This document shows, piece after piece, positions 40 to 49,404 of a stretch of 63,693 bases of DNA. The DNA comes from Octopus bimaculoides. Taxonomy: Eukaryota. Position numbers and translations under genes: made by a program. The DNA lies in assembly GCF_001194135.2 (NCBI RefSeq), contig NC_068994.1, forward strand, positions 38,401,634-38,465,326, given 5' to 3'. The notes under the pieces were generated by a model. That model was not told the origin of the DNA and searched no databases. It saw only the letters and a program-made list of their open reading frames with translations. Each line of letters begins with the position of its first letter. The stretch's first letter is position 1.

Positions 40-1159
40 CTATAAATATAAATCCAATGGATCATCATGATGTTCTGGACATTCAAAAGTAGAAATATAA
101 TTCAAAAATTTAAATGATTTTAAGGAACCTTCAGTTGGGATGTTAATTTCTAATCTTTCTGGACTCTAAATTCTAAATTTTCAAAAGTCTAAAAATCGTT
201 TGTTAGAAGGTTGAGCTCAAAACATCAGTCAAAATATTGAAACAACTTTTAGTATATTTTATTTGCTCTGTCTCCAGGATATCTATATAAATAACCACCT
301 CAGGCTACTATGACTTTTGAGTTTATAATTTTCAAAGAAGCTTACAATAGTAAGCAAGAATCATATATTAGGTAATTTAGTTAGCTTAGTAAATTGAAGA
401 TATGAATGATAACAAGCAGTGGAAATAATTCAATATGTATAACAGCAGTCAAGTACCAAACTAACTTTTCAAATTGAATATGACAGTTCATCAATATTAT
501 GTCAGTAACATAAGAACACTATTCTACAGATGAAAATAGCAAACCTGTCTAATATTTACTGCACTTGTACAGATTACAAAATTAGCAATTGTTTGAAATA
601 TTGTGTATATAAAATTCCTCCAACCATAAAGATTGTACTTGTCAATAAATATTTGTTACTTCTTAATTTCCTATGCAGCATTCACATGATGTTTCTCTAG
701 GAATACCCAAATTGAAAAGAGTGTGAAAATACATTTGGAAAAGACAGATGAACAATAAGGAGGACGATTTAAATGTAAATAGTGAGAGTGGTCATCATCT
801 TTTAACATCAGTTCTCCATGCTGATATGGGATGGACAGTATTACAGGAATTAACTAGCTTGAGAGCTGTCCATACTCCATCTCTCTATATTCCCATAGTT
901 TCTATGATTGAATGCCCTTCCTAATACTAACCAGTTAATGTAGTGAGTGCTTTTACATGGCCCCCATCATGGGCACTTTCATGTGGAACCTCTATGGGCA
1001 ATTTTACATGGGACCTCCATGGGTGTGTTTACATGGTACCTAAATGATTGCTCTGAAATATATATAAAGCAGTTATATGTCATGCAGGAGCACAAAAGCA
1101 AATGAAACATACAACAACAATTTTTTCCTTGATATTCCAAATAAATATAAGCAATTTAC

Positions 1160-3505
1160 CTGTTGCGGTCTGTTTAAAGTCAGATCATTCCACTTATCAC
1201 ATGGCATGGTTCTGCAGTGAATATCTTCCCTGTCAAACTTTGATTGTTGAGATGGCTTCAGTTTCCTCGACATTGTGTAATGAACTCCAGGAGGAACACA
1301 GGTAGGATCAAATATATATTTTGATTGGATGTTTATTGCAGGTGTAACCTTGTGGTACATATCAACACTACTATCATAGTTGCTATCTGTCTGCTTCAGT
1401 CTATGAACTATACAGATTGATATAGAGATCACTATAACAACTGATACAATCACAGCTGCTATAACAATAACAATCATCACATTCAATTGGAGACCATTAC
1501 TTGATTCTGTTGTCGTCTTTGAAGGAGTCTTAAATATCTTTGATGTGTTGTNNNNNNNNNNNNNNNNNNNNNNNNNNNNNNNNNNNNNNNNNNNNNNNNN
1601 NNNNNNNNNNNNNNNNNNNNNNNNNNNNNNNNNNNNNNNNNNNNNNNNNNNNNNNNNNNNNNNNNNNNNNNNNNNNNNNNNNNNNNNNNNNNNNNNNNNN
1701 NNNNNNNNNNNNNNNNNNNNNNNNNNNNNNNNNNNNNNNNNNNNNNNNNNNNNNNNNNNNNNNNNNNNNNNNNNNNNNNNNNNNNNNNNNNNNNNNNNNN
1801 NNNNNNNNNNNNNNNNNNNNNNNNNNNNNNNNNNNNNNNNNNNNNNNNNNNNNNNNNNNNNNNNNNNNNNNNNNNNNNNNNNNNNNNNNNNNNNNNNNNN
1901 NNNNNNNNNNNNNNNNNCATACATGTTCTTTTCTTCTCTGTCTAGTGACTCAGTTGTAGAAATAAATCCCACATCAGATATCTGAAATGGTAGAATATAT
2001 TTACCATTAGATAACAAAGAATAGGTTAATTGTCCTCCATCTCCAATATCTGGGTCTGTAGCATTGACATATCCAACAGGGAAGTCTTTGTGTTCGTTTT
2101 CATAGGTGAGGAACTTAAATATGTCCTGACTAAACTGAGGTTGTACATCATTTATGTCAGTAACAAGCACAGAAAACTGTTTCTCTACTTTCAATGGAGG
2201 TAAACCATTATCTTGACATTTAATGGTGAAATTAAAGCTCTTTTCTCTTTCTCTATCTATTTCACTCTTTACAACAACTTTGTATTTCTTTTCAGACTCT
2301 GAGATTAGCTGAAGGTATCTATTTTGTAAATGGCACTTCACTTGTCCATTTACTCCACTGTCATTGTCAATAGCATTGACATAAGCAAAGAAGCTATGAA
2401 TTTGGGTTCCTTCTGAGAGAACAGCTGTTTTTCCAGTTGACTTAACGACAAATTTGAAGTCAATGTTTGGTGGATTATTATGATGAGTGACACCATTTAC
2501 CAGAACAATGGCAGTTGATGACATTGGTGGGTTGCCATTATCTCTGGCTTCAACAAACAATTTATATATCCTTCCGAACTGAAATTCTTTCTTCAGAAAC
2601 AAATATCCAAGTACTTCATCTAATCTGAAAAACTGTACAGCATATTTTGATGTGATGGCATTGAAAAAATAAGATATTAATCCATTTTCTCCTTCATCTA
2701 AATCTGTAGCTGACAGCTTTGCAATAGGTTTGTTTAACTGGTGTGTGTCATTTACAGTGACATTATAACTATTTTCAGAGAACAAAGGTTTATTGTCATT
2801 TATATCTTTAACTAATATTTTAATATGAAGTACACCTTTTTTCTCTGGTGATTCTTTATCTCTGGCAATTAGCTGAATTTCATAAATGCTTTTTGTCTCA
2901 CGATCTAAGACATGTTCAAGATTTAATTGCAATAAAACAGATCCATCGAATTGTTTAGAAACAAGCAATTTAAAAGGAGTATTTAAATTTTCGATCCCAT
3001 AAGTGATTCTGGAATTCTTAATACTGACATCATTATCAATGGCATTTGGAATTATAGACTTGGTTCCTATTGAATCATTTTCATCAAATTTTAAATGAAA
3101 TTCCTCTTTTGGAAACTTGGGATAATTATCATTGACATCTTCTATTATAAGTTTCAGTTTTAATATCTTAATAACAGAATAGCCATGTTGAACAGTTATT
3201 TCCAATATTCTGAAACATTCCACATTATATTGACACAGAATTTCTGCATCCAATATGGCAGCTGTGTACAAGTGTCCTCCCTGTGTAACATTAAATAACA
3301 GAACTGTTTCATCAGTACTTCCCTGAAGTACATTAAACATCAGTTTGCTGCTATCATCCAGAGATGGTACAGTATCCAATAAGTGTGTATCAGTGACAAT
3401 ATCTCCAATATAGCTGTGTATATCATTGTTCTCTTTCACATGGTAGGTATGATCCACACACCAACAACTCTCAGCCATTAACAACAAGAGAAGTATGTAT
3501 AACAT
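1160..3505 (-). CDS. Pcdh: Protocadherin gene 1, large exon (signal peptide, EC1-EC6, TM, proximal tail); N gap at 1552-1917
   Basis: ORF 1073..3505 has a signal peptide (MLYILLLLLMAESCWC), an EC1 C-X5-C motif (CQYNVEC), DxNDN/LDRE cadherin motifs and a TM (VMIVIVIAAVIVSVVIVISISICIV). CAG|GTAAAT donor at 1160, homologous to the other paralogs. Confidence 0.93.
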
Positions 3506-3654
3506 GGTTACAGTCTACAATTCTGTTGTAAGGAAATATATGTATAATGTTGTTGAAACCTATGAAATAGTGACTTCTTGAATATTTTCTGTTATCACCT
3601 GTAAACATATGAAACATAGGAACTTATTTATGCATTAATAACAATGAACTGTTG

Positions 3655-3740
3655 TGGCCATCCAGTTCACCAGTCCACAGTCAAATCGTCCAATCCATGC
3701 TAGCATGGAAAGCGGACATCAAACGATGATGATGATGATG
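3655..3740 (+). repeat. 3' tail of a SINE/LINE-type repeat ending in (GAT)n
   Basis: cagtcaaatcgtccaatccatgctagcat...aaacgatgatgatgatg; the same tail recurs at ~15395-15460. Confidence 0.6.
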
Positions 3741-4674
3741 AAGTTGCATCCTTTACATTTAGGCACTATTCATAAACTTATTCTAAGATAGAAAATTAAA
3801 AAATATTTTAGCATTTCCTTCTAGCAGTCCATTATTAAAATGGACTGAACTCATTTTAACTTGTTTTTCTAATACATATAAAAACTATTTATGGGATGAT
3901 GGAGATCAAAAATACCATTCATTTAAACACCACCACCTGAGTCTTTTTCACTTTTACTGGTTTTACTCATTGAACAGGAGCCATGCTGGGGCTCTCCCTT
4001 AATACTTATAACGAATTCACTCTCTTACAATATTAGTGCTCTCTAACCGTTCTATTCCTAAAGTTATTAAGTTGCAGACTTTTAAAATGGGTTTCTGTTT
4101 CATTGATACGGTTCGTTTCTTAGATTCACAGTTACTACTGAATCACATTCTGTAATTCGCTATTTGATGAAAACGAAGAAAAAGATAAATACTAACAAAA
4201 CACTAACTAAATGAGTTGTTGCCCTTTGATCCTGACCTAAAAAAAAAAAAAATTAAAACACATAATAGCTGCCTAACAGTCTTAGCTGAAATAAATATTT
4301 TCTTTCATCACATCTACCTTCTAATTACTAATATTGAGCATCATTCTCCCATTAAACATTAGCCAATCTAATCACAGTTAAACATTCAGTAATTTAGTGT
4401 TTACTGGAACAGTAAAATTATAAATTTTAAAAATTTAGTTAAATTATATCTTTCCTAAAATTTACCATTCTAGATGGTCTTTGAGAAATACTATTTATAT
4501 TCCAGATTTGATGAATGGAAATCCTGACAAGGTACAAATATCTGTAAGAAATTCTAACAATAAGTAAACTGATTCTATTATTACATCCTGTATGTAACAA
4601 TGGACTGAACTTGTGATTAAATAAACCATTTGAGAAACAAATAAAAGATTACACAACAGAATAAGTTTTAATAA

Positions 4675-4935
4675 GTACTTACCAACAGGTAACAGTTATT
4701 TATATAATCGTTGCTGTGCTGTTTCAGTGTTTTGGTAACAAAGTTATTTTAGTAGCAGAAGTTCTGAGCAGTTTGGTATGTGATAGTGTTATGGAGTTCT
4801 ATGAAGTTGGTTGTGTAGTATGTAATGTGTGTTGTAGCCAATGACAAGCTGTCTTTTATTCTAATGCAAGGAAACGGAAATACAGCCTCCAACTTTTGCA
4901 GTTAATGATGGGCTGACTCAGAGACTGGTTTACTT
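4675..4935 (-). promoter_or_regulatory. Conserved promoter + non-coding exon 1, copy 1 (gene 1)
   Basis: Minus-strand donor TTG|GTAAGTA at 4683; invariant core tgtgtagtatgtaatgtgtgttgtagccaatgacaag (CCAAT 4838-4842); ggaaacggaa; gctgactca. Homologous block found upstream of six genes. Confidence 0.8.
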
Positions 4936-5401
4936 AACCCACCCCCATTTACACATACATATACATGTGTATGTGTGTTAGTACTTTCATAAATGAATAA
5001 GGAAGAAATGTCTAATGATTAGAATGAAGTGGACAGGCAATAAATTCAGTATGGAAAATATTGTTTCAAAATAATGTTAATATAAATGTGTAAAAGTATA
5101 AGGAACCTAACTTTAGTAACTTTATGTTACAAATTGCACATAACTTTCAGAAAGCTATGATGGAACCAAGATAAAATTAATTAGTATTAGATATAGAAAT
5201 ATGGAAATATATTAATACAAAACAACACCAGTGGAATCACGAAGAAAAGTTTTTTTAGAAAATACGAAACTATGGCTATCAATAAACTTATTTATGTTCA
5301 GNNNNNNNNNNNNNNNNNNNNNNNNNNNNNNNNNNNNNNNNNNNNNNNNNNNNNNNNNNNNNNNNNNNNNNNNNNNNNNNNNNNNNNNNNNNNNNNNNNN
5401 N

Positions 5402-7051
5402 AACATTTGCTGTGTTCTCCAGTGATGGTGTTCCTTTATCTTTTACTAAAATCTTAAACTCGTACATGTTCTTTTCTTCTCTGTCTAGTGTCTCAGTTGT
5501 GGAAATAAATCCCACATTAGATATCTGAAATGGTAGAATATCTTTTCCATTAGTCAACAAAGAATAGGTTAATTGTCCTCCATCTCCAATATCTGGGTCT
5601 GTGGCATTGACATATCCAACAGGGAAGTCTTTGTTTTCATTTTCATAGGTGAGAAACTTAAATATGTCCTGACTAAACTGAGGTTGTACATCATTTATGT
5701 CAGTAACAAGCACAAAAAACTGTTTCTCTACTTTCAATGGAGGTAAACCATTATCTTGACATCTAATTGTGAAATTAAAGCTCTTCTCTATCTCTCTATC
5801 TATTTCACTCTTGACAACAACTTTGTATTTCTTTACAGACTCTGAGATTAGCTGAAGATATTTATTTTGTAAATGACACTTAACTTGTCCATTTACTCCA
5901 CTGTCATTGTCAATAACTTTGACATAAGCAACAAAGCTGTGAATTCGTGTTCCTTCTGAAATAACACCCGTTTTTCCAGTTGACTTTATGACAAATTTGA
6001 AGTCAATGTTTGGTGGATTATTCAAATGAGTGACACCATTTACCAGAACAATGGCAGTTGATGACATTGGTGGGTTACCATTATCTCTGGCTTCAACAAA
6101 CAATTTATATATCCTTCCAAATTGAAAGTCTTTCTTTAAGAACAAATATCCAGTTACTTTATCTAATCTGAAACACTTTATAGCATATGTTGATGTTTTA
6201 CTATTGAAGAAATAAGATATTAATCCATTTTCTCCTTCATCTAAATCTGTAGCTGACAGCTTTGCAATAGGTTTGTTTAACTGGTGTGTGTCATTTACAG
6301 TGACATTATAAATATTTTCAGAGAACAAAGGTTTATTGTCATTTATATCTCTAACTAATATCTTTATATGAAGCACACCTTTTTTCTGTGGTGATTCTTT
6401 ATCTCTGGCAATTAGCTGAATTTCATAAATGCTTTCTGTCTCACGATCTAAGACATTTTCTAGATTTAGTTGCAATAAATCAGATCCATCCAATTGTTTA
6501 GAAACAAACAATTTAAAAGGAGTATTTAAATTTTCGATCTCATAAGTGATTCTGGTATTCTTAATACTGACATCATTATCAATGGCATTTGGAATTATAT
6601 ATTTGGTTCCTATGAAAACGTTTTCATCATATTGAATATGAAATTTCTCATTTGGAAACATAGGAGAATTATCATTGACATCTTCAATTACAACTTTGAT
6701 TTCTAATATCTTAATAACAGAATAGCCATGTTGAACAGCTATTTCTAATATTCTGAAACATTCCACATTATATTGACACAGAATTTCTGCATCCAATATG
6801 GCAGCTGTGTGCAAGTGACCTCCAGGTGTAACATTAAATAACTGAACTGTTTTATCAGTGCTACCCTGGAGTACATTAAATGTCAGTCTGTTGCCATCAT
6901 CCGAAGATGGTACAGTATCCAATAAGTGTGTATCAGTAACAATATCTCCAATAAAGCTATGTATATCATTGTTCTCTTTCACATGGTAGGTATGATCCAC
7001 ACACCAACAACTCTCAGCCATTAATAACACCAACAAAAGTATGTATAACAT
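5402..7051 (-). CDS. Pcdh: Protocadherin gene 2, large exon (EC1 to near the end of EC5); 3' part lost in the 100-N gap at 5302-5401
   Basis: Open frame from ATG 7051 to the gap; closest paralog of gene 1 (same MLYILLL..AESCWCVDHTYHVKENNDIHS start). Confidence 0.88.
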
Positions 7052-7407
7052 GGTTACAGTCTACAATTCTGTTACAAAGAAATATATGTATGATGTTGAT
7101 GAAATCTGTGAGATAATTGTAATTTCTTGAATATTTTCTTCTGTTATCACCTGTAAACATATGAAACATAAAAGTTTATTAAACATTAACAAAGATGAAG
7201 TGATCTAGAAAATTCACATAACTGAAAACTGATAGCAGTACAAAATTGTACCAACATATTACAAGGTATGTCAAAAAAATCTACATTATTATTCCATTCT
7301 TTCTCTCTATATGCATTTGATAGAACTTTATGATGTTATTTTCCTCCTACGCAAATAATTTATGTTTTGGTAGGTAAAAATATTGCATCAAGAAATACAA
7401 TAATATC

Positions 7408-8290
7408 GTGACATCTCACATTCCTGAAGTGCAGTGGCACACAGACAATGCAGCTGAAGCCCTGCAAATATTCAAACAAAACATCATGTACTATTGTGAA
7501 GATGAGGATATTACAGAACCAAGGAAAATAGCCTTAAAAATATTAAGAGGCACTGGAAATGAAGGACTCAAATGTCTGAATGCATCTAGCTTATCAAATG
7601 CTGACAAGAAAAACACAAATAAACTGTGGGAATTGTTCAAAGCACAAGTCAAGACAAACATCAATTTCAGCATGATGAGACAATTGATGACAAACAATAA
7701 CCAAAAAATATGAGTCTGAAGAAAATGAGCTTGAACAACGGATCTTTAAATTATTGATTGCTTCAACTCCCATCAAAGCATTCCAAAAAAAGCTGCTAGG
7801 AAAGGAGAAAGACTATAAACTTGAAGATGCCCTAACAGAGGGTAGAAAATTTGAAGCTATTCTTGCTGGAAGAAGTCAGATACAACAACCTGCAAACACA
7901 GAACCAAGCAATGTAGATATTGTCAAGTGTTCATGAGAAAATTGGGAATGAATGCACCCACCAAGAAAGTGCCCTGCATATGAAGATTCCTGTAACTTCT
8001 GCAACAAAAAGGGACATTGGAAAAAATTCTGTCGTCAATGGGAACAAACAGAATAGAACAAGACAGAAAAATGGCGATGGAAAAAGAACACACAAAAAAT
8101 TTCATGATATAGAATCAAGCAACAAGGCTCATAGTGACTCAGAAGAGAACTGTGATCACTACCACTGCATACAAATTTCAAGCATGCAAGATGAAGCCTT
8201 TGCAACATTGGATATCGTATGTCTACAGAAAGAAAAGGTACAACAAATGAAATTAAAGATTGATACAGGAGCAGCAAAATGGTTTTATGG
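7408..8290 (+). mobile_element. Degenerate Ty3/Gypsy LTR retrotransposon, gag-protease part
   Basis: Gag-like ORF pieces, a CCHC zinc knuckle (CNFCNKKGHWKKFC, ~7990-8035) and an aspartic protease motif LKIDTGA (~8250-8275), with stops and frameshifts. Confidence 0.8.
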
Positions 8291-8299
8291 TATAAAGTT

Positions 8300-10805
8300 T
8301 TTGTAGAAATCCAGTGTTTTCACTGTTCTGCTTGATCTTGTGATTCTTTTGTGGGGTTAGCATTGAGCCCTTTTCATGCATTTGGCCATTATTTTGTGTT
8401 TCTGCATTGTTATCAGGAGGATTATTTGTGATTTCTTTCCTTGAACCATGTTGAGTAACATATTCCATGGAGTTTGTAGGGTTCATAACGTTTCGTGGAG
8501 TTTGTGGGGTCTGTTGGATGGTTGTTTGTTTCTATATTGTTGGGCGATCTGACGGGCATTTCCATCTCAGTGGTCTGTTCATACAGTCTGTCTATGCCTA
8601 TGTCAGTATCTCTCAGTTCCCTTCTGTTTCTCCGCAGATCTCCAAGTATTGTTTTCACAATGTAAGACCTCGGTTCTTTACATTGTCCTGCTATTTCTCC
8701 AGGTATTCAATGTGTGTTGCTTTTGTCAAGTACTCATACAGCTTGACCTTTGTGCAACAGAGGTAAGTCCATATTTGCATGCTGGTCATACGCAGCTTTC
8801 ATTTGTACTTTCTTTTCTTCAAGAAGTTTTCTCTGTCTTTGAGTTTAGTGAGAGTAGCTCCAGTGTAATGGCACAAGTGTTGTGATTGGTCTACTAAATA
8901 GATTTCAGTGGGTGACGGCAACTTAAAGTTTAATGATGTGGCTCTTAGATTCAACAATGCATTGTTGGTATGTTTTCTTTGCTTTGTTCACATTTTTGGA
9001 GAGTCTTTTTGATTTTCAGTACTTGTCTCTCTATGAATCTATTTGATTGGAGGTACCTTAGTGATGTGAATTGTTGAAATGGTTTTCCAGTATGTTGAGG
9101 ACCATTGTCGCTGAAAATTTCATCAGGTCTGCTGAAGGGAGACACAGTCTTTTTGAATTCCTCTAGGACTGCTTTGCTTATGGTTTGGCTGAGGTGAGTC
9201 ACAATCGGAAATTTGGAGAAGTAGTCACAAATGAGCAGAGAAGTTTTGCCACTGATTTCAAGTAGATCTGTTCCTAGTTTTTTTATGGGTCGCTGGGAAC
9301 GTCATGAGGTATCAGTGACTCTTTGTTGTTGGTAGTTGCAATACTTGGCTTATTTGACAGGATCTGCACATTTCTTCAGTGTCTTTGTTGATGCTTGTCC
9401 AATAGGCGCCTTCACAAGAGTGAAGTTTGGTTTTTTTCTATCCCTTGATGAGAAGCATGGAGCTGTACTAGAATGTCATATTGTAGACGAGGAGGTATCA
9501 ACATTTGTGTCCCTTTGAAGAGGATTCCATCTCCTACATCCAATTCATCTAGAAAAGACCAGTGTGTCTTTATATCATCTGCGACTTGTTTGATGTTGTC
9601 TGGCCACCCACAAGTGATTGTTTCCATCAGTGTAGCCAAAGTAGAATCTCTGATGGGGAACTCACGCAGTTGGTAACATTTGTTGATGGAAAAATTGACA
9701 AGGTCAAATTCAGATTAGTAGATTTCTCCCGTAGTCAATTCAATCCCATTCACTCTCACGTCAAGGTCAATGTCTTTATTGCCTTCATGGCATGGGAGGC
9801 AAGACAGAGCGTTGGCTGATATCATGGTATGCCCTGGGCGGTATTTGATTTTGAAATCATATCCCTGAATTTTCTGGAGCATCCTTTGTAGTCAGGGTGG
9901 TGCTCAAAGAAGGGATTTTTCTGCGATCACCTCCAGGGCTTTGTGGTCTGTGATGACTTCAAACAGATACCTGTAGAGGTATGTGTGGAAACTGGTGATT
10001 CCAAATACCACAGTCAAACTACCCAAACATCGATCGTGAAACGCTGGCTGAGATTTGTCAAGGGCTTTCTATGGAAATGCCACAGGTTTGCTATCTTGCA
10101 CAATAGCTACTCCAAGTCCTTTCAAAGTGCTGTCTACCTCAAGTCCTGTCTTTTGCTTTGGGTTAAAGAACCTGATATTTGATTTCTCTGAAATGGTTGA
10201 TTTAAGTTTTCCAAAGCAGTGTATGCAGTCTTCAGACAAATGGTATATTTTTCTTGAGGTGGTCCCTTAATGGTTGTGATTCCATGCTGAAGTTTGGCAT
10301 GAATGTTGCAAAGAAATTCATCATTTACAAGAACTTTTGTAGCTCTTCCTTGTTTTCTGGAACAGACAGGTTTCGAATGTCACGAACACTTGCTGGGTCT
10401 GGCCTGATGCCATCTTTGGAATAAATATTTTCTAAGAAAGAGATTTCGGGTTGATGAATGTGGCATTTGTCCTAGTTCAATACCAATCCAGATTCCTTTC
10501 CTTTTTTCCAGGAGTCTTTGTAGATTTCTGTCATGCTCTTCTTCGTCTTTGCCATGGACAGCGATGTCATCCTTTATTCCAAAAACCCCTGGGAGTTCTT
10601 CAATGATTTCGTCCATTCTAGCTTGAAAGATATCGTGAGATATTTTTAGACCAAATGACAATCTAGTCCAACAATATCTTCGAAATGGGGTCCTGAAGGT
10701 TGTGAGCAGCTGACTCACTTCATCCAAATGAACTGACCAGTATCCTGCTTTTACATCTAGTTTACTGAAAAAACTAGAACCAGCGAACTGAGGTTCCTTT
10801 TATCT
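8300..10805 (-). mobile_element. Degenerate Ty3/Gypsy pol (RT-RNaseH-integrase), opposite strand to gag-protease
   Basis: RT: FSKLDVKAGYWSVHLDE..FRTPFRRY..FGLKISHDIFQ..IKDDIAVHG. Integrase: LHASHQGIEK and FSDNGPQH. Many stops. Confidence 0.85.
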
Positions 10806-11480
10806 TTTACTGGTTTCAGTTATTTGATGGCAGCCATACTAGGGAACTCCCTAAATACTTATAACGCATTTACTCTTTTACAATACTAGTACTCCCCAAC
10901 CATTTTATTCCTAAGGTTTATAAGTTGGTTCGTTTCTAAGCGTCACAGTTACTGAGCCACATTCTATAATTAACTAGTCAATGAAAAGGAAAGAAAAAAA
11001 ACATAAATAATAACAGAACTTTAACTAAATGAGTTGTTGCCCTTTGATCCTGACAAAAACGAAAATAAGAAAGAAAACAGATGCCTAACAGTCAAAGCGA
11101 AAGAAATAAATTTCTTCATTACATACACCTTCTAATTATTAATATTTAACATTTATGTTATATTTAACATCATTTTTCCATTAAACATTAGACAATTTAA
11201 TCACAATTAAACATTCAGTAAAATTATAAATTTAAAAAATTTAGTAAAATTATATCTTTCCTAAAATTTACCATTCTAGATGGTCTTTGAGAAATACTAT
11301 TTATATTCCAGATTTGATGAATGAAAATCCTGACAAGGTACAAATATCTGTAAGAAATTCTAACAATAAGTAAACTGATTCTATTATTACATCCTGTATG
11401 TAACAATAGAATGAACTTTTGATTAAATAAACCATTTGAGAAACAAATAAAAGATTACACAACAGAATAAGTTTTAATAA

Positions 11481-11742
11481 GTACTTACCAACAGGTATCA
11501 GTTATTTATATAGTTGTTGCTGTGCTGTTTCGGGGTTTTGGTAACAAAGTTATATTAGTAGCAGAAGTTCTGAGCAGTTTGGTATGTGATAGTGTTATGT
11601 AGTTCTATGAAGTTGGCTGTGTAGTATGTAATGTGTGTTGTAGCCAATGACAAGCTGTCTTTTATTCCAATGCAAGGAAACGGAAATACAGCCTCCAACT
11701 TTTGCAGTTAATGATGGGCTGACTCAGAAACAAGTTTACTAA
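11481..11742 (-). promoter_or_regulatory. Conserved promoter + non-coding exon 1, copy 2 (gene 2)
   Basis: Donor at 11489, CCAAT 11644-11648, TGACTCA 11720-11726; near-identical to copy 1. Confidence 0.8.
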
Positions 11743-12652
11743 ACCCACTCACACATACACATGTGTATGTGTGTTAGTACATAAATGAATAAGGAAGAAA
11801 TGTTTAATGATTAGAATGAAGAGGGCAATCAATAAATTCAGTATGGAAAATATTGTTTCAAAATAATGTTAATATATATGAATAAAAGTGTAAGAAACTG
11901 AACTTTAAAAACTTTTTAGAAAATACGAAACTATGGCTATCAATAAACTTATTCATCTTTAGTGGAAATGTGTTAAGTAGAACATAGAAGAAAAGCAGAA
12001 TGAGATAATGAACAGAAAGAATGATAGTAAAGAGTTGCATAACCAAACTGTTGCATTTGTTAAATTATAGCAACTCACTTCATTTTGGATTTAATACATT
12101 TCCTCAGAATTAATAGTAATATTGAGGAATTTCACAAAGAACAGAAGCATAACAGAACTACTAATAGATATAACTTGTACAAACTACTGCAGTAAAGTAT
12201 TCTGTAAATCTCAAATTTGTAACAGAACAGTAACATTTCAGAGCCTTGGAAAATGTAAATTGATAGCATTACAGACTATAAATACACGATTCTTGAGATT
12301 TACTATTTTAGAAATGGATTCGCAGAAAAGTTAGAATGTTGTATAAAATGATTGCCGTATTTACTTACAAATTATTATGCACTGTGCTAAAATTGCTGTG
12401 GTTAACTTTATTTTATCATTACCAAATGCCATTAAATATAAACCAAATAATTGGGTTGATTTACAGTAACTTTAAATTTAAAAATAGAAGCTGAAAACTA
12501 ACAGAAACTAATGAATAAAACATTACTAATGCATGTTCTACTATAAAATGAAATATTGTTATATTATTAATATTTTCTATTAATGTATTCCTTACTGAAA
12601 ATGTATTGCCTGTCTTGAGAAAATAATGTGTTGTGTTCTTCAAATTATGCAA

Positions 12653-12978
12653 TTAGACGTTTGTTGCAGATAGAGGAGGAGGAGGTACCTGGGGTGATGA
12701 AGGTACCTTTGGTAGTGTTGTTATTTTGGGTACAGCTGGCAGAGATGGTTTACAGTCTGAAGTAAACTGACTTTTCACTGGTACTGTAGAATGTTGTTCA
12801 GTTGTGTTAGATGCAGTCCCAGTTATAGACAAAGGTATTTGGTCATTTGAGAAGGAAGTGTTATCGATGTTAGGTTGATGGTGATATCCATATTTATTAT
12901 CTCCCCTTGATCTGTTGAGCGTGTCTTGCAGTTGATTTCTCCTATTCCATGTATGGTCACTTTGATAACGGCACAGGT
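12653..12978 (-). CDS. Protocadherin gene 3, terminal exon B
   Basis: Acceptor AG at 12980-12979, phase 1. Reads (D)LCRYQSDHTWNRRNQLQDTLNRSRGD...KPSLPAVPKITTLPKVPSSPQVPPPPLSATNV-TAA with no internal stop. Confidence 0.8.
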
Positions 12979-13617
12979 CTAAAAAATATTGAGTTTGTAC
13001 ATTAATTTACTTTGCGATCAACAATTAACTTCATTAACATTTCTTTCATGCATAAAATTATTCTCCCTCTGTGTAGGTTTGTTCAAAATTTTCTATTTCT
13101 TAACAGCTTGATAATTTATTGATAATGAAGAATTTAATTAAATTCAGATGTTTCTAATATTTACATTGTCTTTCTTGATTATGGATCAGTCATGAGAAGA
13201 AAGTTTAGAAGAAAGATTGATTTTTGATTATTGTCAGATCTGAGAAGGAAGTTTGGAAGAAAAATTGATGTGAATGAATTTTAATAGAACTTCTTAGTTA
13301 ATCAATATCTTAACATGTATATTTTATAGTGTGAGAAAAGAACAATAATCGTTAATTTGAAATTATATTTTAGTCTTGTACTTTTGGGGATTGTTGGAAT
13401 GAAAGCTCCCTTGTTTGAAAAGCAATGAAGGCTTATCAACAGAAACATCTCTTGGAATAAAGCATTGCCTCAATATACTGCTCATGCTAGCATAAGAATA
13501 ATGAACATAAAATGAATGAACACATTAAATTAAATATATGTATTACAATCTCATTATGAAATATAATATTTAATTTAAAAGTTTCTTACATCTTAAGAGA
13601 TGCTATTTCTAACTTAC

Positions 13618-13768
13618 CTGGCAGTTCCTCATAGTGTCCAGCACTACCGACACTCCAGCCATGACCACTATCAGTGTGAGATGACAATGTCGACATCTCA
13701 CTGAATTGGTCAGAACTGTTTAGTTCTCTGTAACCAGGAGACATACTTTCTTCTCTTGGAACAAATAT
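13618..13768 (-). CDS. Protocadherin gene 3, cytoplasmic exon A (151 bp)
   Basis: ttttcAG|ATATTT...CTGCCAG|GTAAGT; IFVPREESMSPGYRELNSSDQFSEMSTLSSHTDSGHGWSVGSAGHYEELP. Confidence 0.85.
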
Positions 13769-15224
13769 CTGAAAATATAAATCCAATAGACCATTATAAT
13801 GTTATTAAAATAGAAACCATAAATTTAAAAACAATTTTAAGAAACCTTCAGTTAGGACATTATTTTAGATCTTAACTTTTCAACAGATTACTTATACCAA
13901 ATCTAGAAATTAGACACAAAACAGCAATCAGAATATTGAAGAAATTCATAGCATATTTTGCATTCTTTGTCTCCTAGAGGTCTTCAACATCACCATCTCT
14001 TAACAGAGATAACTATGAATTAAGTTTGTAATATCTGAACAAGCTTACAATAGAATGTTAGAATCATATATTAGATAATTTAGTTAGCATAGTAAACTGA
14101 AGATATGAATAATATCACAACAGCATTCAGATTCTTAATTATCTTTAAAAATTGTATATGATTTGGTCATAATATTATCCAAGCAATATAGGAATGCCAT
14201 TCTGCAGATATTTAGTGACGGAAGTTGCTAGTGAAGATGCTAACACTTTAATGACTGGACCAAGTCATTAATCCAATGGTTGTGAAATTCCCCTGGTGCA
14301 GTAACTAACAACAACACTTGCGTCCGTGCGTGAATATCTTCATATCCAAGGTTTTATTCAAATGTGTAACAAACAAATTCATACTGTGAGTACACAATGT
14401 TCAATAAAGTTATTTGGGATTGAAGTAAAAGATTCTGAACATCTTGCCATGTTTCACGATGACAGTGTGAAAATAGAAGGAACTCAATCTACAAAAATTA
14501 CTTTCAGACAGGCATTAGGCATAGAATACCATAGCGAGTTGCTGGTAGAAAAAACTATCGAATCCATGTGCTTGGCTCTCTCTCTGATGTTGATCTAGTC
14601 ACGTCTTAGAGTAAAAAAGAGAAATTCAATTGGAATTTGCTCTTAAGTAGGCGATATTGCTTCTAACGCCCTCTTGCGTGTGGTTTAGCAGTTACGCCTT
14701 GTATGCTAGCAAAGGGGGAACTAACCAACGTTTGCTTGGAATGTTCTAGAACTTTCAACAAGGGAGATAACTGTAGTTGGCTCCCAATGAATATTTCGCA
14801 GGCTAAGAACCTGTTTCAAATAGCGTTGCCTACAGATGAAAATAGCAAACATGTTTTATTCACATCTATAGTTTACTACACTTGTGTATATATAAGAGCT
14901 CTAGTACGGCTAAGAATATTATCAATTATTTAATATCCAGTGAATATAATATTCCTCTGACACTAAAACTAATTTGTGGGAGTCAAAAATTTGTATCTTG
15001 TCAATTTACTTTGTAGTATTCATATGGTGCTTCTCTTCAAAGAACTAACTGTAAAATGTATGAAAATATATAGCAGACACACCTACATTAGAGAGAACAA
15101 TTTAAATGCGTAATAGTGTGAGTTTTATATAAAGAAAACAATTTCAAAATATTTACTTAAGATGATTGCTCTGAAATATACATAAAACAGTTTTATGTGC
15201 AGGTGCAGGTGGTACATAAAATAC

Positions 15225-15461
15225 ACCATTTTGAGCGTGGCCGTTGTCAGTACCGCCTAACTGGCCTTCGTGCCGGTGGCACGTAAAAGCACACACTACA
15301 CTCTCAAAGTGGTTGGCGTTAGGAAGGGCATCCAGCTGTAGAAACTCTGCCAAATAAGATTGGAGCCTGGTGTAGCCATCTGGTTCACCACTCCTCAGTC
15401 AAATCGTCCAATCCATGCTAGCATAGAAGACGGACGTTAAACGATGATGATGATGATGATG
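15225..15461 (+). repeat. SINE/LINE-type 3' tail ending in (GAT)n
   Basis: gagcgtggccgttgtcagtaccgcc...gttaaacgatgatgatgatgatg; GC-richer than the flanks and shares its tail with 3655-3740. Confidence 0.6.
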
Positions 15462-15543
15462 AGTTTTATTTCATGCAAGATCACATGAACAGATAAACAT
15501 GCAACGTTTTCTTTGAATTTCCAAATAAATATAAGCAACTCAC

Positions 15544-17894
15544 CTGCTGAGGTCTTTTTAAAGTCAGCTCATTCCATCTATCAGCTGACATATTTCTGCA
15601 GTAAATACCTTCCCTGTCTACCAATGGTTGCTGAGATGGCTTCAGCTTCCTCTCCATTGTGTACTGAACTCCAGAAGGAACACAAGTAGGATCAAATATA
15701 TATTTTGATTGGTTGTTTAATGCAGGTGTAACCTTGTGGTACATATCAACACTGTTGTTATAGTTGCTATCTGTCTGCTTCAGTCTATGAACTATACAGA
15801 TTGATATAGAGATCACTATAACAACTGATACTATCACAGCTGCTATAACAATAACAATCATCACATTCAATTGGAGACCATTACTTGATTCCATTGTTGT
15901 CTTTGAAGGGGTCTTAAATATCTTTGATGTGTTGTTACTAACTGTTAGAGTCAAAGACAAAGTTGTTGTTGATGACAGAACTGGACTACCACTGTCTTTC
16001 ACACCTAGTTCCAGTTCATAGNNNNNNNNNNNNNNNNNNNNNNNNNNNNNNNNNNNNNNNNNNNNNNNNNNNNNNNNNNNNNNNNNNNNNNNNNNNNNNN
16101 NNNNNNNNNNNNNNNNNNNNNNNNNNNNNNNNNNNNNNNNNNNNNNNAGTGGGGATGGTAGTGGACATTAAGACTGAAAGGGTTAACATTAGGGAAACTG
16201 AAATAGGGAGCATTATCATTTAAATCCATAACCTCAACAACAACATTTGCTGTGTTCTCCAGTGATGGTGTTCCTTTATCTTTTACTAAAACCTTAAACT
16301 CATACATGTTCTTTTCTTCTCTGTCTAGTGACTCAGTTGTGGAAATAAATCCCACATCAGATATCTGAAATGGTAGAATATGTTTTCCATTAGATAACAA
16401 AGAATAGGTTAATTGTCCTCCATCTCCAATATCTGGATCTGTAGCATTGACATATCCAACAGGGAAGTCTTTGTTTTCATTTTCATAGGTTAGAAACTTA
16501 AATATGTCCTGACTAAACTGAGGTTGTACATCGTTTATGTCAGTAACCAGCATAGAAAACTGTTTCTCTACTGTCAATGGAGGTAAACCATTATCTTGAC
16601 ATTTAATGGTGAAATTAAAACTCTTTTCAGTCTCTCTATCTATTTCACTCTTGACAACAACTTTGTATTTCTTTTTAGACACTGAGATTAGCTGAAGGTA
16701 TCTGTTTTGTAAATGGCACTTCACTTGTCCATTTGCCCCACTGTCATTGTCAGTAACTTTCACATAAGCAACAAAACTGTAAATGTGAGTTCCTTCTGAG
16801 ATGACAGCTGTGTTTCCAGTTGACTCTAAGATAAATCTGACATCAATATTTGGTGGATTGTTAAGGTGACTGATACCAATAATGTGAACCATAGCTGTTG
16901 AGGACATTGATGGTTTACCATTATCTTTGGCCTCAACAAACAATTCATAGACTTTTCCTAAGTGAAAGTCCTCATTTAAAAATATTTCTCCAGTTACTTC
17001 ATCCAATTTAAAACACTGTTTCATCTTATTTAGTGTTTTAGAACTAAAAATATAAGACATTTTTCCATTTTCCCCTACATCTAAGTCTGTAGCAGACAGT
17101 CTTACAACAGGTTTATTCGGCTTGTGTGTATCATTTAAAGTAACGTAGTATGTATCTTGGGAGAACAAAGGAATGTTATCATTTTTATCTTTCACCAATA
17201 TCTTTACATCAAGTACACTTTCTTTACGTGGTGTTCCCCCATCTATGGTAATCAACAGAATAGTATAAATCTCTTTTGTCTCACGGTCTAAGTTACCTTC
17301 CAAAATTAGTTCTAATAAATCTGTTCCATCTGATTTTTTAGAAACAAGCAATTTGAAAGGAGTGTCTTCATCCTGTTTGACTTGATAAAAGAGTTTAGAA
17401 TTCTGGATACTAACATCATTATCAATGGCATTTGGTAGTATTTCTTTTGTTCCTTTCAAATCATTTTCATCAAACTGCAGGTGAAATTGCTTGCTTGGAA
17501 ATATAGGATAATTATCATTGACATCTTCTATCATAACTTTGATTTCTAATATCTTGATAAAAGAATGGTCATATTGAACTGCAATTTCCAGTATTCTGAA
17601 ACATTCTACATTATATTGACAAAGAGTTTCTGCATCCAATATGGCAGCTGTATATAGTTGTCCTCCAGATGTAACATTAAATAACTGAACAGTTCCATCA
17701 GTACCACCCTGGAGTATTTTAAATGTCGGTTTGTTGTTGTCACCCTGAGACTGTATATTATCTACTAAGTGTGTATCAGTAACAATATCTCCAATATAGC
17801 TGTGTATATCATTGTTCTCTTTCACATGGTAGATATGATCCACACACCAGCAACTATCAGCTATCAACAACATCAACAATATCACTGACAACAT
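15544..17894 (-). CDS. Pcdh: Protocadherin gene 3, large exon; N gap at 16022-16147
   Basis: Joins ORFs 16005..17924 and 15481..16002 across the gap. GCC-ATG at 17894 (MLSVILL), acceptor at 17925, CAG|GTGAGT donor at 15544. Confidence 0.9.
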
Positions 17895-20217
17895 GGCTAT
17901 TTTCAATAGTATATAGTTGACCAATCTGATAAAAAAAATTATATATCATTATATGTGGGTGTGCATGTATGTATGTCAATTCACTTTATAACAATATTTC
18001 TCATGAAACCTATAACTTATATTTTGAAAATTATCAAGAATTGAGGAATTTCTCAACATTATTTATTTCCTTTTTTGAGATTATTAAATTAGTTTCTGGA
18101 ATGAAATATTCCAAACACTTTAAAACAAGTGGTTTTGTATCATGAAAACAGACAATATCAGGTTACTTGGTTATCAAAATGTTTAAGCTTATACAATCTA
18201 CTGACAATATGGATTCAAATTAAAAAGGTCAGCTAACTGTTCAAAATATGAAAACGTTTTATCATGTAGTTTCTTATTTACTTTTGCTTCAGATATATCA
18301 CCATTTGATTATCAAAACTGATCAATAGTTTTGTTAACGTGTCAAGTTTATGTCATAAGCAATGAAAACTGCAAAAACTGTCACATAATACACAGAAAGC
18401 AATCTCAAAAAGTAATATTTATGAGGGATATTTAGCAGATATTAAAGTAAATATAAAATAGCTTTCTACTAAATTTGCTAATGCATATGGGAATAATGTG
18501 TTGATCCAGCATGGCTTTGGCTATGATGAGTAACAAACTAATTCACTACAAAAACACAAGGGATTTTAATGTGATTAGATTATGCTTTCACTTGTAAAAT
18601 CCCTATCAGTCGCTGGAGCAGTGCTGGGCATGTAAATCCTCAACAGAAGACTGAGAAATTCTTATATATGCTATCATTAGACTTCATCTCTTCAACTAGA
18701 GATATCCAGTTCTTGAGCCAACACAGTACTATCTGTTTTGCGGTTTTGCTTTTCTCATCATGCTTGTCTTTGTTTGGTGAGGGGGCTATTTAGGCCTCAA
18801 CGAGAAAATGTTGGAACTGAATAGCATGGAGAAAAACTGTGCGACAGAGACATTCAAATTTTTGTAGTAACATGTACAAATAATAATGGTGAAAATAATG
18901 TTAAAAATAATGTGTGTGTTGATAAGGGAGTTCCTGGCCTATATTATGTTCATTTATTTCAATAATATATTATTAAAACCAGGAGATAACTTCAAATACA
19001 TCCGATATGTGATATGAAAATTTCATTAAATTTATTTTATGATTTCTCTCAATGGGCGTAAAATTGTGTGTGTGTATGATATTACAAACACTGTGCCTAT
19101 GTATGTGTGTATATATAATGTACTGTGTGTGCATGCCATAATGTTATGGGTCTATGTGTATCTGTATGTATATGTTTGATCTAATACTGAGTGTCAATGT
19201 GTATATAGTCAAGTACTATTTGTCAATGTGTACGTGGTGGTCATATGAGTGAAGGAGCTCACTGAATTAAAGCAACAAAGCAAATACCAGTAATTTATTT
19301 AGGTTAATTCAGTCAGATACTTTACTAATAGAACTCCCACCACACATACAAAAACACAGAACTCGATCAAACACAGCTTTAGACCATGTACACATCAAAC
19401 TGAAATCAAATCATAAAATAGATGACATGTATAATGAGTTATTGACAGAGACACTACCTAGTCTCTTACACCGCTAAAAATGTCTAGATATATCAGACCC
19501 TACTGTTTCATATAAGTAGATGTATTAGATATCCTGTCTCTTTTGAGACATGTGTGAATATTATCTAACATGGCCTGTCATGTCTTCATGTAAGATAGCA
19601 GGTAAATTTAGTTGCTATTTCTAACAGGCTGAGCGACTGCATCAAAGCAACCTTGTATTTCTTGATGGTGCAAAACCTTAGTTTAGAACCAGTGTTTACT
19701 CCAACTTCTTTTAAATGTCGAAGTTATTCAGTAGCTTAAAGAACAATTTCTTCATTATTTGCCAGGCCTTATTGACAAAACAAGAACAGTTAAGAATTAT
19801 CTCCCCTTATCTCAATACGGAACTCCTATTTGTAATGGAAATTCTAATAATATATTCTAACTTTACTTATATAACTACAAATGAAAAAGTGTAATTTCAT
19901 GAGTACTCTGTTAAATTTCCATTCTTATTATAGTCTATACTTACTCAAATTCTAATGAAAATTCTGATTAGTTTTACAATACTAAATAAAACATTATTAA
20001 TAAAACCATTTCAAAAGATTAAATAGTTCAAAAACTACAANNNNNNNNNNATAAAAAAAAAACATTATTAGAGGACAAGTTTAAGTTTTTACTATAAAGA
20101 ATGATAACAATCAAGTCTTTTGCTTTTTTTTTTGTTTTCTTTTGGCAAGATGGTAGAACTTGGTAAGGTTTCTGTCAACTAAATAAGCAATTCACACATG
20201 AGGATAACTTTTAATAA

Positions 20218-20475
20218 GTACTTACCAACAGTTGTCAGTTGCTTATACAGTTGTTACTGTGCTGTTTCAGTGTTCTTGCAACAAAGTTATAATAGAGGTA
20301 GTTCTGAGCAGTTTGATATGTGATAGTGTTATGTAGTTCTATGAAGTTGGATGTGTAGTATGTAATGTGTGTTGTAGCCAATGACAAGCTGTCTTTTATT
20401 CTAATGCAAGGAAACGGAAGTACAGCATCCAGTTCTTGCAGTTAATGATGGGTTGACTCACAAATTAGTTTACTT
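20218..20475 (-). promoter_or_regulatory. Conserved promoter + non-coding exon 1, copy 3 (gene 3)
   Basis: Donor at 20226, CCAAT 20378-20382, ggaaacggaag, TGACTCA 20454-20460. Confidence 0.8.
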
Positions 20476-20545
20476 TCACCTCACACACTTACATATACTT
20501 GTGTGTTGGTAATTTGTACATAAATTGAAGGGATGAAAATAAATA

Positions 20546-20749
20546 TTAGGTTGGTGCAAAATAACTGCGGCTTTTTTTTCAATAACTTTATTCAACAAAA
20601 AATTTAAACAAAACGCCAAGCAGAAATTGAAGTAAATGGTGAATATGCACTGGTATAATCATTTAAAGATGTTTTTGTTAAATGTTGTTATTGTTTTTCT
20701 TGAATAAAATTTATTGAAAAAAAGATGCAATAATTATGCCCCAACCTAA
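20546..20749. mobile_element. Mariner-type MITE (TTAGGTTGG.. TIRs, TA target duplication)
   Basis: ta|ttaggttggtgcaaaataactgc ... gcaataattatgccccaacctaa|ta; imperfect ~23-bp TIRs, no ORF. Confidence 0.75.
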
Positions 20750-21358
20750 TAATATCTGAAAGGTTTATGTCAAGCAATATATTCATTATTTTAGATAAAC
20801 TTTTACATTTGAAAATAATGTTTTAATCCTAAAGGAAAAAAAGTCATTTCTATTATTTCAAGAAAAGTTTACAAAAAGTTTGTATTTCGATAGTTTTTAA
20901 CTTTTTACTGATTTTATATATGTCATATATTTAAAAAATTCTTTACAAGATTTTTGAAAATAATTCTTAAACAGTTAATCTGTTTATTTAATTACCTGGA
21001 ATATGAAAGTACTGCTTTGAATAATGAATAATTTTTTTTTTAAATGCAATTATGAAAGGAAGAGTCAAATATTCCTTTACAAAAACAGCTGCTAATAAGA
21101 GCATTAAACTCTTGCAAGTTTGGCTTATTGTATCTAATTTGATCGATTATTAAAAATTTTATATGTTGTTTTAAGAAATATTTAGGTTGATTAAATTTGT
21201 GGTTGTAGATTAATAATATAAACTGTACGGTAGTGTTGTGCCACCTTTCTGCCTTATAGAGATATAGTTACTAAAATTTTCTTCCACGTTTTATATTTCT
21301 AATTTAATTTGATTAGTGCAAATAATGGTGGTCCATAATTTTTATTCAAGGTATGGAG

Positions 21359-21678
21359 TTAGTTTTGCACTGAAGATGGGGGAGGTACCTGTGATATTGA
21401 ATGTACCTTTGGTAGTGTTGTTACTTTAGGTACAGCTGGTAGAGGTGGTTGACAGTTTGAAGTAAACTGACTTGTCATTGGCATTGAAGATGGTTGATCA
21501 GTTATGTCAGACGCGTTACCAGTTATATTCAAAGGTATTTGGTCATGGTAGGAGAAAGTGTTAGTGTCAACGTTTGGTTGATATTGATAGCCATTGTTAT
21601 CTCCCCTTGATCTGTTGAGCGTGTTTGGTGTTTGATTTCTCCTATTCCATGTGTGGTCACTTTGATAATGACGCAGAT
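21359..21678 (-). CDS. Protocadherin gene 4, terminal exon B
   Basis: Acceptor at 21680-21679; (D)LRHYQSDHTWNRRNQ...PPLPAVPKVTTLPKVHSISQVPPPSSVQN-stop (within ORF 21359..21733). Confidence 0.82.
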
Positions 21679-22536
21679 CTAGAAATAGATTGATTTTTAG
21701 GAAGTAAATGTGGTAGAAGTTATACTGAATCAATTTTTAACGTTCATGAACACAACTGTATTTTAAGCACTTTTAGACCATACAGTGCTAATAATTTTGT
21801 GCATAGTTCCCAGGTTTGGCAGAATATCATTTTGTAATGCCACTGATAATTAACAAGAACTAAAATTGTTATCTTTTTTGCTTAACTTGTTTGTTGAACC
21901 ATAACCATACACCAAAATATTACTAAAATATATTTAAAATGTTAGTGAGTATATATTCATAAAAAAAAAACACTACTACAATTAATTTCAAAGTAAATGT
22001 TCCTTGTTCGAATCCAGTCCAGTATTACATGTATATTCAGAAATTAAACACTTGATCACTCAAATTAAACTAATCAAAACACCAAAATATAATGTATGTA
22101 TAGCCAAAGCAGTCTCACACAGAAATGAGTATCACTTAATAATAACATGTATCATGATTTCACTTGATGCTGTTATGAGCAGGCACAGACAATATCTTGG
22201 CCCTCCTACCCATTGAGCTAATGGAACATTAGAGATGTGATAGGTAAAGAGAGCAATGGCTACATTAGCACTTGCATGGTACTCATTTCTGCTGAGTAGA
22301 TGAGTGCAGCATTAAATTATATACCTTGTTCAAGGACACAAGACACTTTCTAGTACAGAAACTGGACCCATAACTTTATGATTTTGAGCCCAACATTCTG
22401 CTACTGGGCTATTAAAAAACGTTGGCTCTCTAAAGATAAATTTGATAGTCAAGAGTAATTATGACTGTATTAATAATACTCATCATCAGTAGCATACATG
22501 TTACTAATGTAGAAACATTCAGTGTCTCTAACTTAC

Positions 22537-22687
22537 CTGGCAATTCTTCATAATGTCCAGCACTGCCGACACTCCATCTATGACCACTATCAATGTGAGA
22601 TGACAATGTTGACCTCTCACTGAATCGGTCAGTACCATTAAGTTCTCTGTAACCTGGAGACATACTTTCTTCTCTTGAAACAAACAT
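22537..22687 (-). CDS. Protocadherin gene 4, cytoplasmic exon A (151 bp)
   Basis: AG/GT flanked; MFVSREESMSPGYRELNGTDRFSERSTLSSHIDSGHRWSVGSAGHYEELP. Confidence 0.85.
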
Positions 22688-27514: not shown

Positions 27515-27778
27515 ATACTTACCAATAGTTGTCTATTGTATATACTGTTGTTATTGTACAGTTTCAATGTTCTGGTAACAAAGTGTTGTAGTAGTAGCAG
27601 GAGTTCTGAGTAGTTTGGTATGTAATAGTGTTATATAGTTCTATGAAGTTGGTTGTGTAGTATGTAATGTGTGTTGTAGCCAATGACAAGTTGTCTATTA
27701 TTTCAATGCAAGGAAACGGAAATACAGCCTCCAGTTCTTGCAATTAATGATGGGCTGCCTCACAGACTAGTTTACTAA
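27515..27778 (-). promoter_or_regulatory. Conserved promoter + non-coding exon 1, copy 4 (gene 4)
   Basis: Donor at 27523, CCAAT 27680-27684; TGACTCA changed to TGCCTCA. Confidence 0.78.
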
Positions 27779-29862: not shown

Positions 29863-30185
29863 TTAGTTGTTTAGTGTAGATAGAATAGGTACCTGAGGTA
29901 CTGAAGGTACCTTTGGTAGTGTTGTTACTTTAGGTACAGCTGGCAGAGGTGGTTTACAGTCTGAAGTAAACTGACTTGTCATTGGTGCTATAGATGGTTG
30001 TTCAGTTATGTTAGATGTGGTACTAGATATAGTCAAAGGCACATGGTCAGGATAACAGGAAGTGTTTGAGTCAATATAAGATTGATATTTATAGCCATTG
30101 TTGTTATCTCCCCTTGATCTATCAAGTGTGTGTGGAAGTCGATTCCTCCTACTCCATGTGAGATCACTTTGGTAACGGCATAGAT
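29863..30185 (-). CDS. Protocadherin gene 5, terminal exon B
   Basis: tttccAG acceptor; (D)LCRYQSDLTWSRRNRLPHTLDRSRGD...KPPLPAVPKVTTLPKVPSVPQVPILSTLNN-TAA, open. Confidence 0.82.
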
Positions 30186-33266: not shown

Positions 33267-33417
33267 CAGGCAGTTCCTCATAATGTCCAGTACTACCGAC
33301 ATTCCAGCCTTGACTGCTATCTGTGTGAGATGACAATGTTAACATCTCACTGAATTGGTCAGTACTGTTTAATTCTCTGTATCCTGGAGACATACTTTCT
33401 TCTCTTGGAGTGAATAT
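33267..33417 (-). CDS. Protocadherin gene 5, cytoplasmic exon A (151 bp)
   Basis: AG/GT flanked; IFTPREESMSPGYRELNSTDQFSEMLTLSSHTDSSQGWNVGSTGHYEELP. Confidence 0.85.
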
Positions 33418-49341: not shown

Positions 49342-49342
49342 N

Positions 49343-49401: not shown

Positions 49402-49404
<3 letters not shown>

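Follow-up and report, generated by a model that had tools for sequence, protein, structure and literature searches.

The genes of one tandem protocadherin subfamily in incirrate octopods each carry a conserved upstream block that we read, with a probability of roughly 75%, as the gene's proximal promoter and non-coding exon 1, the promoter part having been kept by purifying selection since before the Octopus-Argonauta split. The anatomy of this cassette, its one-to-one pairing with genes, its conservation across species and the contrast in rate between its parts are direct observations. We found no description of a cephalopod protocadherin promoter element in the literature searched, and the cassette is apparently undescribed before.

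The window, the whole stretch of DNA that was analysed (63,693 bp, G+C 33%, seven runs of N), was placed on Octopus bimaculoides chromosome CM046614.1 and contains seven tandem minus-strand protocadherin genes; a 26-kb locus of that chromosome (GCA_001194135.2 CM046614.1, 38.42-38.45 Mb) is 100% identical to window positions 19863-46119. Six large minus-strand ORFs encode cadherin repeats (Pfam PF00028, E = 1e-43 to 1e-71), and the 3' end of a seventh gene, g7, was located by tblastn at 63266-63693. The g4 ORF is 100% identical to O. bimaculoides UniProt entry A0A0L8H7U2, and the g5 ORF corresponds to the N-terminal 806 residues of NCBI protein P0004 (955 aa). Paralogues within the window share ~73% protein identity and 81-85% coding DNA identity. 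Their nearest relatives are proteins of O. sinensis and O. vulgaris (75-79% identical) and of Argonauta hians (67%), whereas the remaining protocadherins are only ~50% identical at the protein level, and the window genes therefore constitute a small, distinct subfamily. Two private C-terminal exons lie 3' of the large exon in g3, g4, g5, g6 and the partial g7; four genes are complete in the window, each with private 3' exons, and shared constant exons are absent. These are thus complete four-exon units that follow one another head to tail, and they do not serve as variable exons for a common constant region. The genes of the window have the following coordinates.

1073-3522, minus strand: g1 large exon 2 (cadherin ectodomain and transmembrane region); N gap 1552-1917
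5288-7068, minus strand: g2 large exon 2, cut by N gap 5302-5401; last ~230 codons and exons 3-4 missing
15550-17925, minus strand: g3 large exon 2; N gap 16022-16147; exon 3 ~13619-13768, exon 4 ~12707-12979
23211-25632, minus strand: g4 large exon 2 (A0A0L8H7U2); exon 3 ~22538-22687, exon 4 ~21362-21679
33726-36153, minus strand: g5 large exon 2 (P0004, 955 aa); exon 3 ~33241-33417, exon 4 29863-30192
43958-46415, minus strand: g6 large exon 2; exon 3 ~43315-43464, exon 4 ~41470-41718
58962-63693, minus strand: g7 3' part; large-exon end 63266-63693, exon 3 ~59607-59756, exon 4 ~58962-59237; cassette outside the window

Gene g2 (window 4943-7068) is broken at the 100-N gap 5302-5401, with the g1 cassette only ~350 bp further on; either the assembly has collapsed here or the gene copy is truncated. 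ORFs called over 48809-49585, 1483-1985, 52774-53235 and 54311-54742 were rejected as genes, being runs of N read as codons. On the same chromosome, the gene models of two O. bimaculoides protocadherins of other subfamilies, P0020 and P0032, span 135 kb and 112 kb, and the P0020 model overlaps the adjacent one. Such long models may reflect genuine splicing over long distances to remote 3' exons, or they may be read-through fusions, which have been reported for PCDH genes in the O. vulgaris annotation (PMC9712504).

The original prediction described six blocks sharing an exact 37-mer upstream of these genes, and this description holds. The 37-mer, TGTGTAGTATGTAATGTGTGTTGTAGCCAATGACAAG, has exactly six occurrences, all on the plus strand (4812, 11618, 20352, 27654, 39394 and 55505), where none is expected by chance (100 shuffles), and allowing up to 3 mismatches adds no further copy in the window; the same six copies, and no others, are recovered with a profile HMM of the block. 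Blocks are ~250-290 bp long, with 73-94% pairwise identity among copies. Their edge is sharp at the minus-strand TTGGTAAGTA, a 10-mer found six times in the window, each time at a block end, in agreement with the claim that the blocks end in a TTG/GTAAGTA splice donor. A polypyrimidine-CAG acceptor lies 17-34 nt ahead of the ATG in six of six genes. The blocks had been placed 1.2-9 kb upstream of their genes, and the donor-to-acceptor distances, which are putative first introns, bear this out: 1160, 4420, 2300, 1890, 3109 and 8972 nt for g1 to g6. The gene ranges retrieved begin at the ATG (CDS only); for g5, the ATG at 36119 agrees with NCBI protein P0004. A search for Logan/TSA contigs of the subfamily, with a profile of six 250-aa N-termini and also with a 41-aa N-terminal query that was too short, returned none. 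The six cassettes, c1 in its parts and the others entire, are as follows.

4828-4942, minus strand: nearly invariant promoter-like part of c1 (g1), from the four-species alignment of 18 sequences; K = 0.097 vs dS = 0.49
4683-4827, minus strand: variable, G-poor and ATG-poor part of c1, read as non-coding exon 1, with a putative transcription start inside it or a little upstream; alignable among paralogues, as the introns are not
4676-4685, minus strand: 5' splice site TTG/GTAAGTA of c1; last exon base 4683, GT 4682-4681
3523-4682, minus strand: putative g1 intron 1, 1160 nt, ending in ttccttacaacag; exon 2 from 3522, ATG 3505
11479-11748, minus strand: c2 (g2); core 11618-11654, exon 1 end 11489, intron 1 7069-11488, ATG 7051
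20216-20481, minus strand: c3 (g3); core 20352-20388, exon 1 end 20226, intron 1 17926-20225, ATG 17894
27514-27783, minus strand: c4 (g4); core 27654-27690, exon 1 end 27523, intron 1 25633-27522, ATG 25601
39253-39524, minus strand: c5 (g5); core 39394-39430, exon 1 end 39263, intron 1 36154-39262, ATG 36119
55378-55626, minus strand: c6 (g6); core 55505-55541, exon 1 end 55388, intron 1 46416-55387 (3 N gaps), ATG 46390

Related loci in O. sinensis (L002, L004, L009), O. vulgaris (L005) and Argonauta hians (L003) hold 13 further blocks, giving a total of 19 across the four species. All 19 are in gene-sense orientation. For sixteen the downstream large exon is in view, at a distance of 1.1-8.9 kb; the loci of the remaining three stop short of it. 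Blocks and genes are paired one to one in each of the four species: wherever the region upstream of a subfamily gene is in view, a block is present. The annotation splits one O. sinensis subfamily gene (L009, 10001-14478) into ORFs of 376 and 550 aa, which must be due to a frameshift or to misassembly; its cassette is intact at 6781-7093.

The assertion that each protocadherin has its own copy is thus correct for all subfamily genes in view, but does not extend to the family: four protocadherins of other subfamilies (L006 and L007 from the same O. bimaculoides chromosome, L008 and L010 from an ENA assembly) have no block within 10 kb upstream. An nhmmer match in L008 (E = 5e-8) was rejected as a homologue because, on reading the sequence, the similarity is that of a CA repeat. 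As far as these four genes test it, the cassette is subfamily-specific. Three of the four have an acceptor-like site 27-67 nt ahead of the ATG, and an upstream non-coding exon may therefore be general.

The same distribution bears on the idea of a dispersed repeat, or a piece of a transposon, lying near these genes by chance, the alternative that the original prediction had itself named in the form of a repeat common at non-protocadherin loci. No copies were found beyond the subfamily genes in the DNA sampled, which comprised the 63.7-kb window and ~92 kb from loci of other protocadherins, and neither the one-to-one, same-orientation pairing with subfamily genes in four species nor the perfect splice donor at the block end fits a repeat. 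Around c4, the one copy checked, there are no inverted terminal repeats. We consider a repeat origin extremely unlikely. A structured non-coding RNA gene was likewise rejected: no Rfam family matches at gathering score, the weaker E-value matches being at chance level, and the core-to-donor part of c4 has no stable fold (z = +0.73). The window also contains no tRNA-like gene.

Eighteen of the 19 blocks, 14 of them from Octopus, were aligned, and in gene sense the cassette divides into three zones. The first, of ~100-115 bp, is nearly invariant across both genera and has the form GTCTGTGAGTCAGCCCATCATTAACTGCA..AACTGGAGGCTGTAYTTCCGTTTCCTT..(CATTGG)..ACAGCTTGTCATTGGCTACAACAC; in c1 it reads AGTAAAC .. 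TGAGTCAGCC .. TAACTGCA .. TTCCGTTTCC .. CATTAG .. CTTGTCATTGGCTACAACAC. The second is a CA-rich leader of 134-181 nt, variable in sequence and in length, with a sense-strand G content of 7-13%. The third is the donor TTG/GTAAGTA, which does not vary among the 18 aligned copies of the four species. In most Octopus copies a TG/CA- and TA-rich low-complexity tract adjoins the 5' edge of the cassette (window 4936-4985 for c1). In three Argonauta copies an ACT/CTA microsatellite is expanded within putative exon 1 (L003 ~7040-7090, 14960-15020 and 23230-23290), lengthening the leader from ~145 to 169-181 nt.

The 37-bp core that had been called invariant is so within the window, but between species conservation in all 18 aligned copies is limited to the first ~20 nt (CTTGTCATTGGCTACAACAC); the other 16-17 nt are kept in most Octopus copies, but two O. 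sinensis copies have lost 4 nt of them and Argonauta has a different sequence there. Each cassette has one or two inverted CCAAT boxes, the second inside the invariant CTTGTCATTGGCTACAACAC, and the distance from CCAAT box to donor is 147-161 nt. As to the further motifs said to be kept in most copies, GGAAACGGAA is retained in five of the six window copies and so is GTTTACT, yet the latter is a common 7-mer (22 occurrences in the window), and GCTGACTCA is exact in only three of six. The most diverged copy is c6, in which the AP-1-like and ETS-like motifs are degraded and 4 nt are deleted. From consensus sequences, and as leads, we take AGCCAATGA to be a match to an NF-Y site, TGAGTCAGC in the first zone to be NF-E2/AP-1-like, GCTGACTCA to be of the NF-E2/CNC-Maf and AP-1 class, the tandem TTCCGTTTCC (on the other strand ACGGAAGT/GGAAAC) to be ETS-like, and TAACTG/CAGTTA to be Myb-like.

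Substitution rates separate the zones. Over 105 pairs the mean NG86 dS is 0.49 and dN 0.17, with a K of 0.28 at 4-fold sites; mean pairwise K is 0.097 in the promoter part and 0.30 in the leader (exon part). Between Octopus and Argonauta the corresponding K values are 0.13 and 0.44, against a dS of ~0.6. Measured against silent sites, evolution of the upstream zone is thus slower by a factor of 3-5, and it is slower than that of amino-acid-changing sites as well. The leader changes at about the silent rate, yet remains alignable, unlike the flanks. Over the short distance between O. bimaculoides and O. vulgaris the block (~95%/90%) is only slightly better conserved than its flanks (88-92%).

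That the flanks of genes 3-6 fail to align was also confirmed by sensitive blastn (word size 7): introns and intergenic DNA of the paralogues show no homology except between g1 and g2, which are a recent duplicate pair, and in one ~340-bp repeat. The latter, 82-84% identical, occupies window 37768-38107 and 52465-52809 in intron 1 of g5 and of g6, adjoins an N gap, and is probably a transposable-element fragment. With flanks unalignable and ~100 bp of upstream sequence evolving 3-5 times slower than silent sites, recent duplication alone is, as originally argued, insufficient to explain the cassettes.

Identity among copies might instead arise mainly by concerted evolution, that is, by gene conversion between neighbouring paralogues and not by purifying selection. 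Some pairs of neighbouring blocks are indeed almost identical though their coding sequences differ more, for example Os_a/b (dS 0.115, K in the exon part 0.007), Os_c/d (0.164 vs 0.007) and Ah_b/c (0.254 vs 0.012). The O. sinensis pairs, however, sit in kilobase-scale flanks that are 93-99% identical, and so are recent whole-unit duplications. More generally, the differences between blocks track gene orthology, with signature substitutions joining Ob_g1/g2 to Os_c/d/e and Ov_b/c, and Ob_g5 to Ov_a, and with block distance correlated with silent-site distance (Spearman 0.59-0.74). Nor could conversion within a genome produce conservation of the promoter part between species and genera. We consider concerted evolution a very improbable main cause, while some local gene conversion may have occurred in Argonauta, where the flanks of Ah_b/c are ~76-85% identical. 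Concerted evolution of the 37-mer in particular had been considered in view of L002, which lacks it, and was dropped: other O. sinensis copies and O. vulgaris copies carry the 37-mer, and the differences follow orthology.

The O. sinensis duplications offer a separate observation. Between Os_a and Os_b (L002 1-12406 vs 14500-22273) the coding exon is 95.2% identical (dS 0.115, dN 0.045) whereas non-coding sequence is 98.3-98.9% identical, a contrast that suggests diversifying selection in the ectodomain exon, or patches there converted from other paralogues. The contrast is absent between Os_c and Os_d (L004 5500-12475 vs 14000-20227), at 94.1% coding and 93.3% non-coding identity.

Purifying selection on a promoter joined to a non-coding exon 1 is our preferred account of these patterns. 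The claim of a promoter/first-exon cassette is strongly, if indirectly, supported by the gene-sense orientation, the one-to-one pairing, the invariant donor, the matching acceptor and the slow upstream part. From these we infer a start within the block: transcription would begin some tens of nucleotides downstream of the CCAAT box, giving a first exon of ~80-120 nt, and the donor TTG/GTAAGTA would be spliced across the 1.2-9 kb intron to the polypyrimidine-CAG acceptor ahead of the start codon in the 2.4-kb ectodomain exon. The cassette would have been present in the subfamily ancestor before the Octopus/Argonauta split and copied with each gene duplication. With the cassette inherited by all members and its promoter part kept, all members would therefore receive the same transcription-factor input, most simply a common cell-type or stage expression programme.

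A different division of the block was also weighed, in which all ~270 bp would be transcribed from the 5' edge or above, and conservation would reflect an RNA-level leader function such as translation control or mRNA localisation. Sense ATGs are depleted across the entire block, in the promoter-like part (2 vs 28 expected) as in the leader (8 vs 23.6 expected from shuffles), although these counts are not independent across copies, and conservation begins abruptly beside the TG/TA-rich low-complexity tract. Because the depletion extends over the promoter-like part too, the start site cannot be placed from it. Yet the most conserved part is the upstream one, dense in promoter motifs (CCAAT, ETS, AP-1/NF-E2-like), while the donor-proximal part evolves at a nearly neutral rate, and neither the predicted fold of the core-to-donor part of c4 nor the Rfam search points to a structured RNA. 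Transcription of the whole block is in our view unlikely.

In motif content and order the cassette matches an ordinary TATA-less Pol II promoter of the NF-Y CCAAT plus ETS/AP-1 kind with a non-coding first exon. Like such a unit, it places a CCAAT box upstream of a short, unstructured, ATG-poor leader, has a promoter more conserved than its leader, and couples a strong 5' splice site to an acceptor just ahead of the start codon. Unlike one, it has a TATAAA-like motif 22-24 nt before the donor and its CCAAT box 147-161 nt from the donor; the factors are putative. The TATA-like hexamer (TATAAA/TATATA; for example window 4705-4710 and 27544-27549) occupies this position in 13 of 18 copies, and one further copy has it at -16 relative to the donor. 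If transcription began 30 nt beyond the hexamer, the start would already lie past the donor, which leaves the hexamer unexplained by the promoter/exon-1 reading. Judged from sequence, the cassette is nonetheless a feature of an ordinary kind that appears to agree with promoter and first exon in every respect examined, from the consensus donor at a fixed exon end and the matching acceptor to an upstream part slower than both leader and neutral sites.

The original prediction went further and likened the cassette to the conserved sequence element (CSE) of vertebrate clustered protocadherins. The CSE contains a CGCT box within a CTCF-type consensus and lies at a fixed short distance from the start codon of the variable exon. 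Vertebrate clusters have no intron between CSE and start codon, and their alpha and gamma variable exons are spliced to shared constant exons. Present at nearly all cluster members, the CSE mediates stochastic, enhancer-dependent promoter choice. It was described by Wu et al. 2001 and later shown to be a CTCF site (PMC7811963). The octopus cassette is similarly a short, highly conserved element, one per gene and gene-oriented, in the promoters of locally duplicated tandem protocadherins, but at its core stands an inverted CCAAT box accompanied by ETS-like and AP-1/NF-E2-like motifs. With a CTCF-type pattern, CCASYAGRKGGCRSY, we found no consensus inside the blocks (four matches in the window at up to 2 mismatches, vs 1.4 by chance), and CGCT/AGCG is absent from all 14 Octopus copies among the 18 aligned. 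The likeness fails in architecture as well: a putative intron of variable length (1160-8972 nt) separates block from ATG, the block being fixed in position relative to the donor and not to the ATG; each gene has private 3' exons; and among the genes sampled the element occurs in one subfamily only. The cassette thus resembles the CSE only in the abstract, a weak analogy in which motif, ATG distance, constant exons and family-wide presence each failed.

Could the cassette nevertheless be a convergent CSE analogue, the substrate for stochastic or combinatorial promoter choice among subfamily members in each neuron? Tandem, head-to-tail genes with near-identical promoter cores have the formal prerequisite for competing for a shared distal element, and single-cell data from O. 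vulgaris show ~19 PCDH genes per cell on average, some of them cell-type specific and others ubiquitous (PMC9712504). Against this stand the missing CTCF-type consensus and CGCT box, the absence of the block upstream of the four other protocadherins, and the completeness of each gene with its own 3' exons, so that a variable-to-constant splicing choice is not needed. We regard such an analogue as improbable. One might also imagine an independently evolved, CTCF-independent counterpart of the CSE, in which a shared promoter of NF-Y/ETS/AP-1 type at every subfamily member would allow neurons a stochastic or combinatorial choice and other octopus protocadherin subfamilies would have equivalent cassettes of their own; its chances appear similarly slim.

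Tandem families elsewhere provide looser parallels. Vertebrate olfactory receptor promoters have O/E and homeodomain sites common to the tandem family. Alternative promoters occur in the shortened Dscam arrays of chelicerates (cited in PMC6339937). In both, as in the subfamily described here, tandem paralogues have a similar promoter inherited by duplication, which is compatible with co-regulation or with choice. The octopus motif set is distinct, and the conservation, ~100 bp nearly invariant, is far tighter than a loose motif pair.

Octopus protocadherin genes number ~170 and expanded independently. As a candidate promoter with an exon 1 downstream, the cassette gives a handle on their regulation: an invariant promoter of ~100 bp whose candidate sites can be named, a predicted junction of exon 1 with exon 2 for each gene, and a profile for scanning cephalopod genomes. 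It would also be useful for annotation, marking true 5' ends and separating read-through 'fusion' gene models in these clusters. If members of the subfamily are simply co-expressed, the cassette would be an ordinary conserved promoter; if they are expressed in random subsets of neurons, protocadherin promoter choice would have been solved a second time, by a different mechanism.
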